A stretch of 64,000 bases of DNA, from NCBI GenBank assembly GCA_964188305.1, contig OZ076893.1. The stretch is one strand, 5' to 3'. The number at the start of each line of letters is the position of its first letter. Within the stretch, counting starts at the first letter, position 1. Below, piece after piece: positions 3,002 to 52,398 of this stretch. The position numbers and the translations under genes are program-made. The notes below the pieces were generated by a model, which saw nothing but the letters and a program-made list of their open reading frames with translations, was not told where the DNA came from and ran no database searches. The stretch is from Podarcis bocagei. Its lineage: Eukaryota.

Positions 3002-3051
<50 letters not shown>

Positions 3052-3185
3052 TGTACCCTGCCCATCTGCCTCCATTGCACTAGCCACTCTAGGCTGCTTC
3101 CAACCAAATATACAAAAACACAACATAACACCACACATTAAAAACTTCCTGATACAGGGCTGCCTTCAAATGTCTATGGAAGGTT
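3002..3185 (-). mobile_element. L2-type 3' end fragment with (TTA)n tail
   Basis: (TTA)n followed by ccctgcccatctg...agccactctaggctgcttccaac; same family as 28660-28808 and 40020-40152. Confidence 0.7.
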
Positions 3186-4888: not shown

Positions 4889-5567
4889 ACCATTCCACCA
4901 GCTGAGAGAAGGAGACCCACCAATGGGACAGTGCTTGTGTCTCCAGAGACCTCCTGTGGGCACAAATATCCCAATGGTGGTGGAGACCAAGACAGGGGAC
5001 ATGTCAAGAGGGCTGTTAGTAGATGAAATGGACCAACATATCCCCAAACAAGCTCAGGAATGACACTGTTGAACCTGGTGCAGTTATATTCTGCTGTTGT
5101 GGTCAATGGGAAGGGAGGAAAGAAAAGCAAGGGAGCAGGGAAATAGGAAAATCTGTCCCCCACACCTCCTGCCCCCATCATACCAAGATGGCAGAGCTTT
5201 TGGGTCTGGTGGTTGCTCCTCCATGAATCTTCTATGGGCGCGCGCAACACACACACACAATGATTCAAATAGCCATGCAACAGATTTCAGATCATATTTC
5301 TCTGGCTACAATATTGTAACAGGTTCATCTCTTGCACCAGCTTAAATGGATTATTCCCTGATCCGACCATTGATTGAGCATCACAGACCCACACAGTTGG
5401 CAGCCCCTGTGATGTAATGGCAGAGAGCTTTTAGGGATGGAGGTAGGCCAAGGGAGAGCAAGAATAGGGAAAGGGATGCAAAGGAAATGACATTCCTCCA
5501 AACCACATGTTCTACTTGCTCCCAGTGTTAAACACAAATGCTGACTTCTACCAGGTTAGCCTTTCAG

Positions 5568-24705: not shown

Positions 24706-27700
24706 TTATTTATATCCCGCCCTCCCCAGCCGAAGCCGGGCTCAGGACGGCTAACAACACTAAAATAGTGCAACATTCTAACAACATTATAAAAATTAAT
24801 TAAAATCAAAATTGATGGCAACCATAAACTAAAGTTCTGTAAAGATTGTCAAAGGAGGGAGTCAGGCTGCGCCCTGACCAAAGGCCTGGTGGAACAGCTC
24901 TGTCTTGCAGGCCCTGCGGAAAGATGTCAAGTCTTGCAGGGCCCTTGTCTCTTGTGACAGAGCATTCCACCAGGTTGGAGTCGCAGCCGAAAAAGCCCTG
25001 GCTCTAGCTGTGGCCTGGGACCTTCAAGATGTTTTTATTTGAAGACCGTAAGTTCCTCTGTGGGGCATACCAGGAGAGGCGGTCCCGTAGGTACGAGGGT
25101 CCTAGGCCGTATAGGGCTTTAAAGGTTAAAACCAGCACCTTAAACTCCACCGGGAGCCAGTGCAGCTGGTATAGCACCGGATGAATGTGATCTCGCAGTG
25201 AAGACCCCGTAAGGAGTCTCGCCGCGGCATTCTGCACCCGCTGGAGTTTCTGGGTCAGTCTCAAGGGCAGCCCCACGTAGAGCGAGTTACAATAATCCAG
25301 TCTGGAGGTGACTGTCGCGTGGATCACAGTGGCTAAGTCAGGGCAAGAGAGGTAAGGAGCCAACTGCTTAGCTTGGCGGAGATGAAAAAATGCCGCCTTT
25401 GTTATAGCTGCAATCTGCGCCTCCATGGAGAGGGAGGTATCGAAGATTACACCCAAACTCTTAACGGACGGTGCTGGCGCTAATTGCACCCCCCCAAGAG
25501 ATGGGAGTTGCCCCCTCAATCCCATATCATCCCATCCCAGCCAGAGGACTTCTGTCTTCAAAGGATTTAACTTCAACCGGCTCCCACGTAACCATCCAGC
25601 AATAGCTTCCAAGCATCTGATCAGTGTGTCTGGGGCCGAGTCAGGATGGCCATCCATCAATAGATAGAGTTGGGTGTCATCAGCATACTGATGGCAGCCC
25701 AGCCCAAAACTCCGGACAAGCTGGGCAAGGGGGTGCATAAAGATGTTAAAAAGCATCGGGGAGAGTATCGCACCCTGGGGCACACACCAAGGAGTGGCGC
25801 GATGACAATTCCCCCCCAAGCGCCACCCTCTGTCCCCGACCAGAGAGAAACGAGCGCAGCCATTGAAGGACTGTGCCCTGGATCCCCACATTGGCAAGGC
25901 GGTGGTCCAGGAGTTTGTGATCGACCATGTCGAAGGCTGCTGACAGGTCTAGAAGAATCAGCAGCCCCGACCCGCCTCGATCCAGCTGCTTGCGGAGATC
26001 ATCTGTTAGGGCGACCAGAGCCGTCTCGGTCCCATGACCAGCGCGGAAGCCGGACTGGAATGGATCCAGAGCCGATGTTTCATCCAGAAACCTACCAAGC
26101 TGTTCAGCAACCGCTCTCTCAATCACCTTACCCAGGAATGGAAGATTCGAAACCGGGTGGTAATTGGGTAGATCTAAGAGATCTAATGATGTTTTATTTA
26201 AGAGCGGGCACACCACTACCTCCTTCAGTTCCCCTGGGAATGTCCCGGTGCCAAGGGGGGCCCGCACCTCGTCTGGACATGCTCTAATCAGCCAAGACGG
26301 GCACAGGTCGAGAGGACAAGTGGTGGGCTTTCCAGCTCGGAGGAGTCTGTCCACATTGGCTGGGGATATCCGGTCAAAGTGGTCCAATACTGGACCCGAG
26401 GACAGTCGAGGGGCCTCCAGTTCCTTTATTGTATCCAAATTGGCAGGGTGGTCATGGCGGAGCAACAGGACCTTCTCTGCAAAAAAGCTTGCAAATGCCT
26501 CACAGCTGTGTGTCAAATTGTTATTTAAATTTGGCTGTCCTTCAAGGGACGTTAAAGACTGAATTATACTAAATAATTGCGCCGAGCGAGAGCTAGCGGA
26601 TGCAATGGAGGCCGAGAAGTAGGACTTCTTAGCGGCCTTCACTGCCATCTCGTAGGTTTTCATAAAAACCCTATAAGATGTTCTTGAAGCTCCGTCACGG
26701 GCATCCCGCCATACTCGCTCTAGTCATCTGAGGTCCCGCTTCATTTTCCCGGGAGCCCGGTTTCTGCGGGGTCGCAGAGGGCGCTTAGGTGCGATCTCAT
26801 TGATGGCTGCCAGGAGCTGGGTATTCCAGCCCTCAACAAGCTCAGTCAATGAGTCGCCAGGGGGAGAAAGGTCCCGCAAGGCTTGACAGAATCTGTCAGG
26901 GTCCATCAGCCTCTGCAGGCGAGCCCAAATCGGCTCGCCACCTAAGCAGGGTGGGGGTGGAACGTCAATCCTGGCTTTCAGAGCGTAGTGATCAGACCAT
27001 GGCACCTTCATCGAAGGAAGCATGATCACAGCTATACCGACGCCAAAGATCAAATCCAGCGTGTGGCCTGCTTGATGTGTGGGGCCCGAAACAAACTGGG
27101 AGAGCCCTAGTGTCGCCATGGAAGACACCAGGTCCAGAGCCTATGAGGAGGGAGTGGCATCAGCATGGATGTTGAAGTCCCCCAAGGAACTCCAAGGCCC
27201 TCCAAGGCCCAGGAACTCCAAGGCCCAACCGGCCACCGCCTCCAGCAGGCCTGACAGGGTGGCTGCTCGTGCGCTAGGTGGCCGGTACACCAGCCAGACA
27301 GCCAAGCTCACCTCGGAGCCCCACACTAGGCCAACACATTCAATGCCGGGGATCGACAGTGATGGTAGAGCCCTGAAACAACAATCTTCCCGGATTAATA
27401 ATGCCACCCCTCCCCCCCCGGCCCACAGTCCGCGACTGGTGGAGGATGGAGAAACCCGGGGGTGCCATCTCTCGTAAGGTAACAGTTTCCCCTTCGCCCA
27501 CCCAGGTCTCCATCACACAAGCCAGGTCGACCCCCTGCGAGGTGAAGAAATCTCGCAGGGTGGCGGTTTTGTTGCCTATAGACCTGGCATTGCACAACAC
27601 CAGTGACGGAGGTGAGTAATCCTTGCTCACCCTACCCTTGTCTCTCGGGATGGGGCGCAGATTGGAAGGGGTATGAGCATATCCGTATCTCGATCCCCTT

Positions 27701-28260
27701 CGCCTATGACATCTGCCCCCACCGCCATACCTCCCTCGCCCCTCCATGGTAGGAATCCCAAGCCTCATACTCGCCTCCATTTACAAAATATAAAAGCAAA
27801 ACAAACAAACAAACAAACAAAAACAATTACACCAAAACAAAACCAATCCCCACCCCACTCAACAACCATCCCACCCCAACCCAAAATAAAACAAAACAAA
27901 ATAAAAAACATGAATAAAAACCACCATTTATGGTGGTACAACAAAGTAAAAGTAAAAACACTTTTAAAACACTTTAAAATATATAAAAACATTTTAAACA
28001 TTTGCTGCAGCAGCACCAGTGTCCTTAAAGTTGTGGCGGTGGTGAATGTGGGCCGCGCCCCACGGCCTGGTGGATTGGGCTTGCAGGGGGAAGAGTCCTC
28101 CCCACAAACTCATGGCGAAGCGGCAACAGCAATGTCCCGAGGCCTCCTTGGCGCCTTATATGCTGAGGTGGAGTATGGGGCCCGCCCCCAGGCCCAAGGT
28201 GGAGAATGGGCTTGCAGGGGAAGCAGTCTCCCCACAAACTCACGGTGAAGCGGCAGCAGC
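24657..28260 (-). mobile_element. L2-clade LINE, ~3.6 kb, with frameshifted ORF2
   Basis: APE endonuclease motifs (LCNARS..ETW, GDFN, GHTLDLIF, SDH), RT motifs (QSGFR, LLDLSAAFD, PQGAILSP, YADDTQLY) and the L2-type C-terminus (SRLDYCNS, QNAAARLL, LHWLPV). 3' (TTA)n tail; 5' boundary approximate. Confidence 0.95.
25004..27780 (-). pseudogene. L2 ORF2 (endonuclease plus reverse transcriptase), disrupted
   Basis: Split over ORFs 27340-27780, 27141-27407, 26724-27128, 25746-26663 and 25004-25897. Confidence 0.92.
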
Positions 28261-46198: not shown

Positions 46199-46350
46199 AC
46201 CTCTAGTACTAAGTTAGTTCTCTAGTTCTCTAGTACTAAGTTAGTTCTCTAGTACTAAGTTAGTTGGTCTTTAAGGTGCTACAGGAAGGATTTTTTTTTA
46301 TTTTGACTATGGCAGACCAACACGGCTACCTATCTGTAACCTCTAGTACT
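46199..46350 (+). mobile_element. Short Penelope-like 3' end insertion with a reiterated 5' junction
   Basis: gttggtctttaaggtgctac...gactatggcagaccaacacggctacc resembles reptile Neptune/Penelope termini (from memory). 12-bp TSD acctctagtact. Confidence 0.7.
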
Positions 46351-49385: not shown

Positions 49386-49440
<55 letters not shown>

Positions 49441-49522
49441 TTTCGTAGATTTTCACGGGTACAGGAATGCAGGTTTTGGTGTCTTCGGGTGTCTTCCCGT
49501 GTAAGAGTTGGGGTGTCTAGGC

Positions 49523-49556
49523 GACGTTTCGACGAGGTCTCACTCGTCATCTTCAG
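49523..49556 (-). ncRNA. Minimal hammerhead ribozyme motif
   Basis: Reverse complement of the same core. Confidence 0.75.
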
Positions 49557-49633
49557 GCTGGAGCTTTCGGCTTCTTGTTACTGGAACAGAGCTGTTACTT
49601 CTGTTCCAGTAACAAGAAGCCGAAAGCTCCAGC

Positions 49634-49667
49634 CTGAAGATGACGAGTGAGACCTCGTCGAAACGTC
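49634..49667 (+). ncRNA. Minimal hammerhead ribozyme motif
   Basis: CUGAAGA-U-GACGAG(UGAGAC)CUCGUC-GAAA-C-GUC. Confidence 0.75.
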
Positions 49668-49831
49668 GCCTAGACACCCCAACTCTTACACGGGAAGACA
49701 CCCGAAGACACCAAAACCTGCATATATATATATATATATATATATTTGCTTTCGTAGATTTTCACGGGTACAGGAATGCAGGTTTTGGTGTCTTCGGGTG
49801 TCTTCCCGTGTAAGAGTTGGGGTGTCTAGGC

Positions 49832-49865
49832 GACGTTTCGACGAGGTCTCACTCGTCATCTTCAG
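49832..49865 (-). ncRNA. Minimal hammerhead ribozyme motif
   Basis: Reverse complement of the same core. Confidence 0.75.
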
Positions 49866-50815
49866 GCTGGTGCTTTCGGCTTCTTGTTACTAGAACAGAG
49901 CAGGATCTCAGTGTTTGAGTTCCTATAAATACTGTTGAGGGGGTGTGGTGTATAGCCTCCAACGTTCTGGGCAGAGAGGAAGTTCCCAGGTTAGTGTGCC
50001 TTTTCTTCTTTTGTTCATTAATTACTTGAGGGATATCTTGAGTGATTTCTTGAGTGATATTCTGAGTACCACTTAGGAGGGTCATTAGGTGTGGATTAGT
50101 TGCTAAAGCTTTCGTGTCTTGACCTCTTGAGCTTGTGAAAAGTTTTTCTGAGAAGATGGCTGTACTGCACTTAGTTGTGCTCTGGCTTGGCTTCGTGTAT
50201 AGGGGCGAGCTGTGGTTTTGTGCCCTGTGCCAGCCAGATCTGTGTAGGGATTGCAGGGGGGTGCAGCATCCGGAGGTGCCACTATGGTTTGGCTACTGGA
50301 TGGTGTCTGTAATTTATCTGTGGAGAGGGTCTGGGTTTGGGTCTGGTGTGGTTGATTGGAGATGGCGTTCTGTGTGCCTCTGGTTCTGGTGTCGGTTTTT
50401 GTGGGGAGGGCTAATTTCCAGATGTCTGGCAGGCGGGACGTGTCGGGCACGTGTCGGGCACAAAACCACAGCTCGCCCCTATACACGAAGCCAAGCCAGA
50501 GCACAACTAAGTGCAGTACAGCCATCTTCTCAAAAAAACTTTTCACAAGCTCAAGAGGTCAAGACACGAAAGCTTTAGCAACTAATCCACACCTAATGAC
50601 CCTCCTAAGTGGTACTCAGAATATCACTCAAGAAATCACTCAAGATATCCCTCAAGTAATTAATGAACAAAAGAAGAAAAGGCACACTAACCTGGGAACT
50701 TCCTCTCTGCCCAGAACGTTGGAGGCTATACACCACACCCCCTCAACAGTATTTATAGGAACTCAAACACTGAGATCCTGCTCTGTTCTAGTAACAAGAA
50801 GCCGAAAGCACCAGC

Positions 50816-50849
50816 CTGAAGATGACGAGTGAGACCTCGTCGAAACGTC
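50816..50849 (+). ncRNA. Minimal hammerhead ribozyme motif
   Basis: Identical core to 49634-49667. Confidence 0.75.
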
Positions 50850-50903
50850 GCCTAGACACCCCAACTCTTACACGGGAAGACACCCGAAGACACCAAAACC
50901 TGC

Positions 50904-50941
<38 letters not shown>

Positions 50942-52398
50942 CTCACAGGTGAGGGAAGAGTGTCCCTGCTTTACTGGTACCCTAAGCACAACGAGATAAT
51001 CCTGCACTGCTTGCAATTATGCATTATTGTACTTCATCCATTTTTATTTCTCTCTTTTGCAGATAAGGTAGTTCATTTTGTATGAGTAGCTTTCGCTTTG
51101 GCCATCTGCATGCACGAATCAACATGCTCCACTGAGGAGGCGTGAGATGGATAGTGCATTCAGACCCTTTTAATTTTTGTCTGGTGGTAATGATAATAAA
51201 ATATCATCTAGGTCATTACTGTGGGAACTTATTTATTTCTGAGGGTGATTGACTGGATTTTTGAACAGGCCTCTCTGGTGTTGTTTTATTCAGAGGATAA
51301 CAAAGGAAATAGTTATAATTCCTAAACATCCCTCCCCATGCCCTTGGATGTGCCTTAGAAGAGGAGATTTTAATTACTCTTCAGGTACCATATTGTTCCA
51401 ACTGTAATTAACGGTGGAGTTAATGGAGTGACAAAATTACTGGAAGATGAATATATGCCGCCGTCTTGTTTTAATTGACTTCAAATCTTACACTAACTGT
51501 ACCTGCCTTTAGATAAATGAAAGACTAGCAATATTAAGCAGACATTACTGGAACAATGCTGTGGAATACAAGCCACAAATTGAGAACTGTGTCTACATAA
51601 GCTGCCTTTAAACATTCAGGAGGCTGTGTGAGGGCCCAGATTGGTTAGGGGGAACGTGCTGGCCATGTCCCTAACATCACCACATACGCCACATCTGCCC
51701 CCGCCTCTCTCAACCTTTGTGCAGTCTCACTTGAAGGATTCTAACCATATTTGTACCATGCATTTAAAGCATTATGATACCACTTTAAACAATCATGGCT
51801 TTCTCCCAAGAATTATGGAAGCTGTGGTTTGCTAAGGGTGCTGTGAGTTGTTAAGAGACCCCTGTTGTCATGGACAAGGAGTCAGCTTCACCTGCTGAAC
51901 AGCAGCCTGAAGGGGAAGAAAGTGGAATGACTCCTGCAGCTGATCAGCCTTCAAGGACAGGAGAAGAAGCTGGCTTCAGCCTTCTTAAACAGTGATCTCA
52001 GTCAAATGCTGGAAACAATGTCTGTGGTTCTGGGCTCTACCTTGCTGCTTCTTGCTCTCCATATGGATTCTGTGGTTATCTGGATTCCCTGACCGCTGGA
52101 CTGTCTGTATGGGACTCTGCTCTCAGCCAAGTGTTCCTCAGAGACTCCCATTGCTTAGCAATGGGGACTTGGACAGGGCTGCGACACCTATTCCCCCTTC
52201 CCAGAGTGGTTTAACTGGCCAATCACAAGTTGACTTCATGTGCCATTTAGTATTCCAAAGATCAAGAAGCTGATGGACCTTTTCTTCTATGCTGCTATAT
52301 GAGATCTTGCTCACTATCCTGGGCTAGACATTCTCACCAGCTGTAGTTGCAGAAATCACTGTGTTCAATTTGGACGGGCTACATAAACTGTATCAGTA

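Follow-up and report, generated by a model that had tools for sequence, protein, structure and literature searches.

Paired hammerhead motifs in two neighbouring inverted Penelope-like insertions of Podarcis bocagei

A 64-kb stretch of the Podarcis bocagei genome (64,000 nucleotides of contig OZ076893.1, assembly GCA_964188305.1; hereafter the window) contains four copies of a hammerhead ribozyme motif, two on each strand. We find that the region holding them consists of two 5'-truncated, tail-out inverted insertions of a Penelope-like element (PLE), A (49439-49723) and B (49748-50905), within a single (TA)n tract. To the reading as a whole, in which two neighbouring insertions of one PLE family entered (TA)n and the hammerheads are the ordinary ribozyme of the element, carried along here as passengers, we assign a probability of roughly 0.88. 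The locus is dead transposon debris, a well-preserved case of a known element and a known insertion structure.

Two insertions of one Penelope-like family

The motif, CTGAAGATGACGAGTGAGACCTCGTCGAAACGTC, is 34 nt long, and an exact search of the window recovered it four times with 0 mismatches; exact copies expected in shuffled sequence are none. Direct reading at 4/4 sites gives CUGAAGA, GAA(A), A15.1/U16.1, and C17, with all invariant hammerhead positions present (by the criterion C3 U4 G5 A6 N7 G8 A9, G12 A13 A14, A15.1/U16.1, and H17 at the cleavage site). An extra bulged U lies between A9 and G10.1. Helix II comprises 6 bp (GACGAG/CUCGUC) with a G10.1-C11.1 closing pair and a 6-nt loop, while helix III is only the palindrome ACGU, without a loop 3, and the cleavage triplet is GUC. 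Helix I has two contiguous pairs (gc/gc). The bulge, the G10.1-C11.1 pair, the loop-less palindrome, and the long helix II are those of minimal type I hammerheads. A descriptor for minimal hammerhead ribozymes (min-HHRs), written from the published description of minimal PLE hammerheads (bulge, G-C closing pair, palindromic 15.2-16.2, helix II of 6 to 8 bp), matches these four sites only in the window, against about 0.03 matches per simulated window. As there are two insertions, each with two mirror-image arms, the four motifs are not independent. A first-pass annotation of this DNA had already described the four cores with their coordinates, strands, and structural details, all of which are correct by direct reading and exact search.

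The element was recognized through the open reading frame (ORF) that begins at the AUG made of A9, the bulged U, and G10.1 and stays open through the end of the tailed arm, for 37 codons. Among 1.84 billion representative proteins, the 37-codon peptide has one match, P0001, with 68% identity over residues 1-37, the N-terminus. The contig from which P0001 comes, L077, carries a downstream ORF with RVT_1 (E=2e-17) and GIY-YIG (E=0.0015, below the Pfam cut-off) and is evidently a PLE; its relatives carry DUF8422, RVT_1, and HTH_animal. Compared with the window arms, L077 is 100% identical across the 44-nt hammerhead block, 65% across the 80 nt upstream, and 80% across the 84 nt downstream. The proteins closest to the L077 reverse transcriptase-endonuclease (RT-EN) are from Podarcis muralis (85%) and Vipera latastei (83%), with the Anolis carolinensis PLE known as PAc (Poseidon_Ac; Frangieh et al. 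2024, PMC11167929) at 45%. Judged from these sequences, the family belongs to the Poseidon/Penelope clade of PLEs, with its nearest relatives in squamate reptile genomes. As the L077 ORF runs on past the end of the tailed arms, the window copies terminate within the coding sequence of the following tandem unit, untailed ends lying at +84 and tailed ends at +112 relative to the AUG, and the 28-nt tail of A aligns to the part of the L077 ORF that follows. Further inside, a peptide encoded by the left copy of B has 49% identity to L077 residues 611-716 (E=2e-24), which is the C-terminal tail of the PLE ORF and of low complexity. A Pfam search of the ORFs inside the insertions gave no match, the 158-aa ORF that ends in the hammerhead loop not being a domain, and a homologue search with a 189-aa N-terminal fragment returned only the fragment itself.

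The nearest DNA match is a 95-96% identical copy at a Podarcis muralis locus, L078. There a palindrome of the same PLE family, 4.65 kb long, sits in (TA)n; 5 nt separate its arms, and just one of its ends is tailed (1394-1421). Because this locus has the same structure, the inverted architecture is, on such comparison, a regular product of the PLE family and not an assembly artefact.

Both insertions display the anatomy expected of PLEs, namely 5' truncation, an inverted neighbouring copy, a tail at one end, and (TA)n on all flanks (Table 1). In each, two copies of the 3' part of the element meet head-to-head and point their 3' ends outward. The arms of A are 124 nt long and 100% complementary, with 9 nt between them, and those of B are 450 nt long and match at 449/450 positions around a 230-nt centre. 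As the reverse complement of 49748-50455 aligns contiguously to L078, this centre is part of the left copy, on the minus strand. Across the 126 nt common to A and B, two positions differ, and within either palindrome the two arms mirror the same variant; each palindrome was therefore copied from one template, and A and B look like separate insertion events. The window holds no further copies of the PLE unit beyond A and B. At the 5'-5' junctions, the spacer of A re-copies 'tgttact' out of the adjacent arm, and this and the 11-nt duplication in B look like footprints of template jumps. A TATA-like block (CAGTATTTATAG) in the arms of B lies about 70 nt upstream of the hammerhead AUG and is conserved with L077 amid diverging surroundings.

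Table 1. Features of insertions A and B and of their flanks, together with the metagenome contigs of one repeat family
Feature	Position	Strand	Details and basis
(TA)n microsatellite, left flank of target	49390-49438	.	direct reading; repeat family D1
Tail of insertion A, 28 nt	49439-49466	-	element +85..+112 from AUG; left end only; identical to B tail (direct repeat D2)
Insertion A, left copy, ~125 nt	49467-49591	-	5'-truncated; inverted repeat I2; model R1 49.5 bits
Hammerhead, A left copy	49556-49523	-	
Spacer of A, 9 nt, 5'-5' junction	49591-49599	.	direct reading
Insertion A, right copy, 124 nt	49600-49723	+	AUG 49640; ends at +84, untailed
Hammerhead, A right copy	49634-49667	+	
(TA)n remnant separating A and B	49724-49747	.	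direct reading
Insertion B, long left copy, 708 nt	49748-50455	-	includes 28-nt tail 49748-49775; 699-nt contiguous alignment, 95.9%, to Podarcis L078
Hammerhead, B left copy	49865-49832	-	ORF coordinates and alignments
AUG, B left copy	49859-49857	-	ORF coordinates and alignments
Pseudo-long terminal repeat (pLTR)/3' untranslated region, B left copy	50102-49866	-	ORF coordinates and alignments
Stop codon, B left copy	50105-50103	-	ORF coordinates and alignments
Last ~117 codons of PLE ORF, B left copy	50455-50106	-	
Tandem duplication, 11 nt (gtgtcgggcac x2), 5'-5' junction of B	50440-50461	.	direct reading; L078 homology stops here
Insertion B, short right copy, 450 nt	50456-50905	+	inverted repeat I1, 449/450; ends at +84, untailed
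ORF end with stop codon, then pLTR, B right copy	50576-50578 (stop)	+	alignments; model R1
Hammerhead, B right copy	50816-50849	+	AUG 50822; alignments; model R1
TATA-like box (and conserved block), B arms	50750-50759 (block 50747-50758); 49931-49922 (block 49934-49923)	+; -	alignment to L077
(TA)n(CA)n microsatellite, right flank	50906-50942	.	direct reading
Ga0209755-type repeat contigs (1)			L019, L026, L027, L029, L033-L036, L041, L042, L048
Ga0209755-type repeat contigs (2)			L050, L051, L054, L059, L060, L062, L063, L066, L069, L076

Conservation of the ribozyme among related elements

The hammerhead is located on the AUG of the ORF in 7/7 related PLE loci with DNA sequence. The Podarcis and L077 hammerheads are identical to those of the window. 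In Vipera, helix II reads GACGGA/UCCGUC, in which both partners of two pairs are exchanged, and a G-U variant also occurs; one metagenomic PLE shows a U3-A8 covariation in the core together with GGCUC/GAGCC as helix II. The 6-bp helix II of Anolis PAc is different throughout, and two other relatives are degenerate or bulged. Sequences from related PLEs were combined in alignment A2, a small sample of 11 sequences (10 distinct) in which some loci were selected for the signature that the GAAACGUC box leaves in the N-terminal peptide rather than for helix pairing. Its helices have 87.8% of their cells paired, compared with 60% in shuffles, of which 0/500 reach the observed value, and with 29-52% in slid controls. 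Changes on both sides are found at 7/9 helix pairs, including the first two pairs of helix I, and helices I and II evidently covary among related PLEs. The GAAACGUC box is translated as S-K-R in the window family and as E-T-S in PAc; as the codon frames differ, it is the RNA sequence and not the peptide that is conserved.

A covariance model, R1, was made from Vipera, Anolis PAc, and three PLEs from SRA or metagenomes, with the window, L077, and L078 excluded. With it, the four window sites reach 49-49.5 bits (rough E ~2e-14), the next best match being 10 bits. Descriptor and model thus both return exactly the four sites. The first-pass annotation had proposed minimal type I PLE hammerheads in paired inverted copies, naming a hammerhead search as a check and a lack of stem II covariation as contrary evidence; the identical block in L077, the covariation present among related PLEs, and the independent covariance model all back the proposal.

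Two of the related loci have features of their own. In L080, a metagenome-derived PLE with a 994-aa ORF, tandem hammerheads at 117-150 and 3028-3061 lie 2911 nt apart; their core is UUGAAAA instead of CUGANGA, and the start codon is again A9-U-G10.1. In L079, from Vipera latastei, hammerheads at 740-773, 1427-1460, and 5359-5392 fall within the annotated span of a thiamine pyrophosphokinase gene, with GUU instead of GUC as the cleavage triplet in 2/3 and a G-U in helix II in 1/3.

The core pattern was also scanned for more widely. Public viral contigs gave 0 matches, and nine matches in public genome contigs, all without helix II, are read as chance. Metagenome contigs gave 67 matches in 26 families, 10 of which have a helix II of at least 4 bp with unrelated sequence (binomial 4e-7). 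As a looser kind of support these families back the motif class, none of them being a close relative, and Pfam found no match in the ORFs adjoining those matches that were checked. About 20 metagenome contigs, nearly all from sample Ga0209755 (Table 1), share CCTGAAGAAGGAAG...GTCGAAACGTCGCC with conserved flanks; hammerhead boxes are present in this repeat family, and its helix II is not convincing.

Origin of the inverted copies, folding, and competing explanations

The ribozyme straddles the AUG (A9-U-G10.1) at which the ORF of the following tandem unit opens. Because it straddles that AUG, each copy reaching about 120 nt from the 3' end carries a hammerhead, and this in turn accounts for one motif per strand in each inverted pair. 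In the proposed origin of the inverted copies, the PLE protein would nick AT-rich DNA, here (TA)n, on both strands, and reverse transcription would start at either of two internal RNA sites, +84 or +112 from the AUG, leaving one untailed and one tailed end. Synthesis of complementary DNA would then abort early, after 125-708 nt, and the 5' ends would be joined by template switching, which would yield the 9-nt spacer in A and the 11-nt duplication in B. In 3/3 palindromes examined (A, B, and Podarcis L078) exactly one end is tailed and one untailed, and the spacers are 9, 230, and 5 nt, respectively. As the insertions went into a (TA)n microsatellite, a target duplication is unreadable.

In these tail-out copies the sense strand of each reads outward. 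Every sense hammerhead, on either strand, is therefore part of the downstream arm, and its perfect antisense partner has been transcribed before it appears. In the minimum free energy (MFE) fold of 49439-50905, calculated for both strands, each sense core is paired along its full 34 nt with the antisense copy; the fold has an energy of about -1250 to -1280 kcal/mol over 1467 nt, with >90% of bases paired. Forcing a double-hammerhead fold costs +122 and +120 kcal/mol on the two strands, compared with +11 kcal/mol in a hypothetical direct tandem of the 126-nt unit. These energies are nearest-neighbour estimates, with co-transcriptional kinetics, proteins, and helicases outside the model, and the gap is very large. 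On this modelling, the ribozymes at the locus would be passengers, locked in long double-stranded fold-backs, and should not cleave in read-through RNA.

The first-pass annotation had instead seen in the four cores a bidirectional self-cleaving cassette or proto-retrozyme, in which two sense cores dimerise and release a 309-nt RNA (minus, 49523-49831) or a 1182-nt RNA (plus, 49668-50849) that may circularise or truncate a host transcript. The arithmetic of both products is correct, and each strand does carry two same-strand sense cores. Dimers are the presumed active form of min-HHRs and have some activity in vitro (PMC4209133), the PAc hammerhead cleaves with protein help (PMC11167929), and retrozymes are related to PLE pLTRs (bioRxiv 10.64898/2026.07.22.740005). 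The hypothetical products would moreover be nicked dumbbells with abutting ends (nt 1 pairs with 164 and the last nt with 165), a ligation-friendly geometry. What weighs against dimer cleavage is that the sense cores sit in the downstream arms of near-perfect hairpins whose antisense is already transcribed, with every nucleotide of the core engaged in the MFE fold and a penalty of ~+120 kcal/mol for the double hammerhead, against ~+11 kcal/mol in a direct tandem. In addition, single min-HHRs gave no detectable cleavage and dimers only low activity (PMC4209133), and Anolis RNA-seq contains no reads that start or end at the PAc cleavage site, where cleavage seems to be protein-assisted (PMC11167929). 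The 309-nt spacing on the minus strand arises because two separate insertions lie side by side; a direct repeat takes up 180 of the 309 nt, the unit is not amplified in tandem and has no further copy in the window, and the proto-retrozyme claim, like that of dimer cleavage, finds no support. We consider such a cassette highly unlikely. A related idea, that the adjacency of two PLE palindromes accidentally made a circle-forming unit through rare, perhaps protein-assisted cleavage and ligation of the dumbbell products, appears extremely unlikely. If it were true, the 5'-OH and 2',3'-cyclic-phosphate ends of the dumbbell would meet opposite an uninterrupted complementary strand, ideally placed for sealing by an RNA ligase, and the locus would be a concrete intermediate on the way from a PLE relic towards a retrozyme or viroid-like rod RNA.

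Inverted-repeat copies of transposons are a general concept as triggers of small RNAs, and the 124-bp and 450-bp duplexes could likewise, if the locus is transcribed, be a hairpin-RNA source, processed into small RNAs for trans silencing of the active PLE family, with the hammerheads uninvolved. The extreme stability of the fold-backs and the match of their arms to the PLE pLTR, promoter region, and ORF ends agree with this, and such a role is compatible with the PLE-insertion reading, not exclusive of it. The only Rfam matches at the locus are to microRNA-precursor models, which respond to generic hairpin shape and stay below their gathering scores. We regard this role as unlikely. Near-perfect inverted repeats with short spacers, such as those seen here (100% and 449/450), are also a known pattern of assembly artefacts, produced for example by chimeric long reads through a missing adapter. 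Here, however, two palindromes lie side by side with different private variants, and each begins and ends exactly at element termini beside (TA)n, one end bearing a templated tail. A public assembly of Podarcis muralis, made independently, shows this architecture again at an unrelated locus. The structure also fits the published PLE insertion pattern (PMC8557442). An artefact has next to no chance of being the explanation.

Several points weigh against the preferred reading of two PLE insertions with passenger ribozymes. The window copies are truncated and without an RT-EN core, and the family assignment comes from homology of their 3' parts to external loci. The insertion mechanism is inferred by analogy from the in vitro biochemistry of PAc, which is 45% identical. 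The tiny spacers (9 nt in A, 5 nt in Podarcis) suggest fold-back synthesis over two independent priming events, and the pattern of one tailed and one untailed end is explained by neither. The folding estimates ignore kinetics and proteins, while PAc cleavage is reported to be protein-assisted. For the motif itself, a helix I of two pairs stands at the weak end of the published range; its first two pairs are retained in 10/10 distinct related sequences, with compensatory changes, and the D. virilis Penelope hammerhead likewise has a 2-bp helix I (PMC4209133). Finally, the Rfam hammerhead families (Hammerhead_1, _3, _II, HH9, and HH10) gave no match to the window at the gathering threshold or at E<=10. 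This blank is uninformative, because the Rfam models also miss the experimentally validated hammerhead of Anolis PAc, the loop-less variant being outside them.

Relation to known systems and significance

The closest characterized system is PAc, whose ORF begins at stem II (PMC11167929). Where two units join, its published consensus and an Anolis genomic locus, L083, read CUGAGGA-U-GCCUGC...GUGGGC-GAAACGUC, arranged as in the window. The PAc protein cuts both strands of the DNA at AT-rich sites and extends them, and its reverse transcription uses two internal RNA start sites, the major one 111-118 nt into the ORF, with the tail being the stretch between them; hammerhead mutants leave insertion in vitro unaffected (PMC11167929). 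Like PAc, the window elements have a hammerhead on the ORF start, with the GAAACGUC core, an ACGU helix III, and a 6-bp helix II. They also share with it an AT-rich target, a short pLTR with a TATA-like box, and copy ends at about +84 and +112 (in PAc, 111-118 plus an upstream site) with the intervening stretch as the tail. In contrast to PAc, they belong to a different family, the L077 RT-EN protein being 45% identical to that of Anolis, and the sequence of helix II is entirely different, with compensatory changes at 4/6 pairs. The loop has 6 rather than 7 nt, N7 is A rather than G, helix I has two contiguous pairs rather than three, and GAAACGUC stands in the other codon frame (S-K-R versus E-T-S). 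Whereas PAc has tandem full units, the window has truncated inverted copies only.

Among min-HHRs, pairs 100-700 bp apart on opposite strands have been reported, and most copies lie in truncated PLEs (PMC4209133). The window motifs likewise occur in opposite-strand pairs in truncated PLEs, and they share with these ribozymes the unpaired nucleotide between A9 and G10.1, the G10.1-C11.1 pair, the palindromic 15.2-16.2, a long helix II, and a short helix I. The sole difference from typical min-HHRs is that helix I has two contiguous pairs rather than 4-5. As for the insertions, inverted 5'-truncated PLE copies with a 30-40 bp tail at one end only and a bias to (TA)n have been described (Craig et al. 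2021, PMC8557442). PLEs are known to prefer AT-rich or (TA)n targets, and the concept of the tail is likewise found in both reports (PMC8557442, PMC11167929). The window resembles PLE insertions described earlier (Evgen'ev and Arkhipova 2005; PMC8557442) in its inverted 5'-truncated copies, its tail of about 30 bp at one end, and its (TA)n target. Unlike those insertions, both pairs here consist of short relics (124/125 and 450/708 nt), with no full-length unit between or beside them.

Retrozymes consist of non-coding 170-400-nt units repeated in direct tandem (Cervera and De la Pena 2020, PMC7229834; Li et al. 2026, preprint), with classical type I animal hammerheads according to the authors and abundant circular RNAs (PMC7229834; Li et al. 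2026). Their derivation from PLE pLTRs has already been published (bioRxiv 10.64898/2026.07.22.740005). The window shares with them a type I hammerhead of PLE ancestry and two same-strand motifs a few hundred nucleotides apart. It differs in that the same-strand pair comes from two adjacent palindromes and the unit is self-complementary; the direct tandem array of hammerhead-bearing units that defines a retrozyme is absent from the locus.

Elsewhere in the window, broken reverse-transcriptase ORFs lie at 25004-27780 (-), with RVT_1 at E ~1e-15 and a faint hint of Exo_endo_phos upstream. Those at 25004-26663 (-) were considered as the parent element and rejected, as they have no GIY-YIG and no DNA similarity to the insertions; the remnant is probably a decayed long interspersed nuclear element unrelated to the PLE insertions. 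At 46199-46350, an element of about 75 nt (ggtctttaaggtgctac...cagaccaacacggctacc) has three reiterations of 'ctctagtactaagttagtt' before it and 'ctctagtact' after it, and this element has no match to the min-HHR descriptor or to model R1.

The main value of the locus is for annotation: pairs of hammerheads in TA-repeat fold-backs are, in this genome, the normal footprint of PLE insertion, not new ribozyme devices. If the TATA-like block is a pLTR promoter, each arm of B could drive outward transcripts with a single hammerhead, unmasked by an antisense copy. The A9-U-G10.1 start-codon layout, known from PAc, extends across several related PLE families, in which compensatory helix changes and the different codon frames of GAAACGUC argue that the RNA is under selection. 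In vivo and in another family, the genomic ends at +84 and +112 reproduce the two reverse-transcription start sites of PAc in vitro. The rule of one tailed and one untailed end in 3/3 palindromes, with very short spacers in 2/3, could constrain models of how PLEs give rise to inverted copies.

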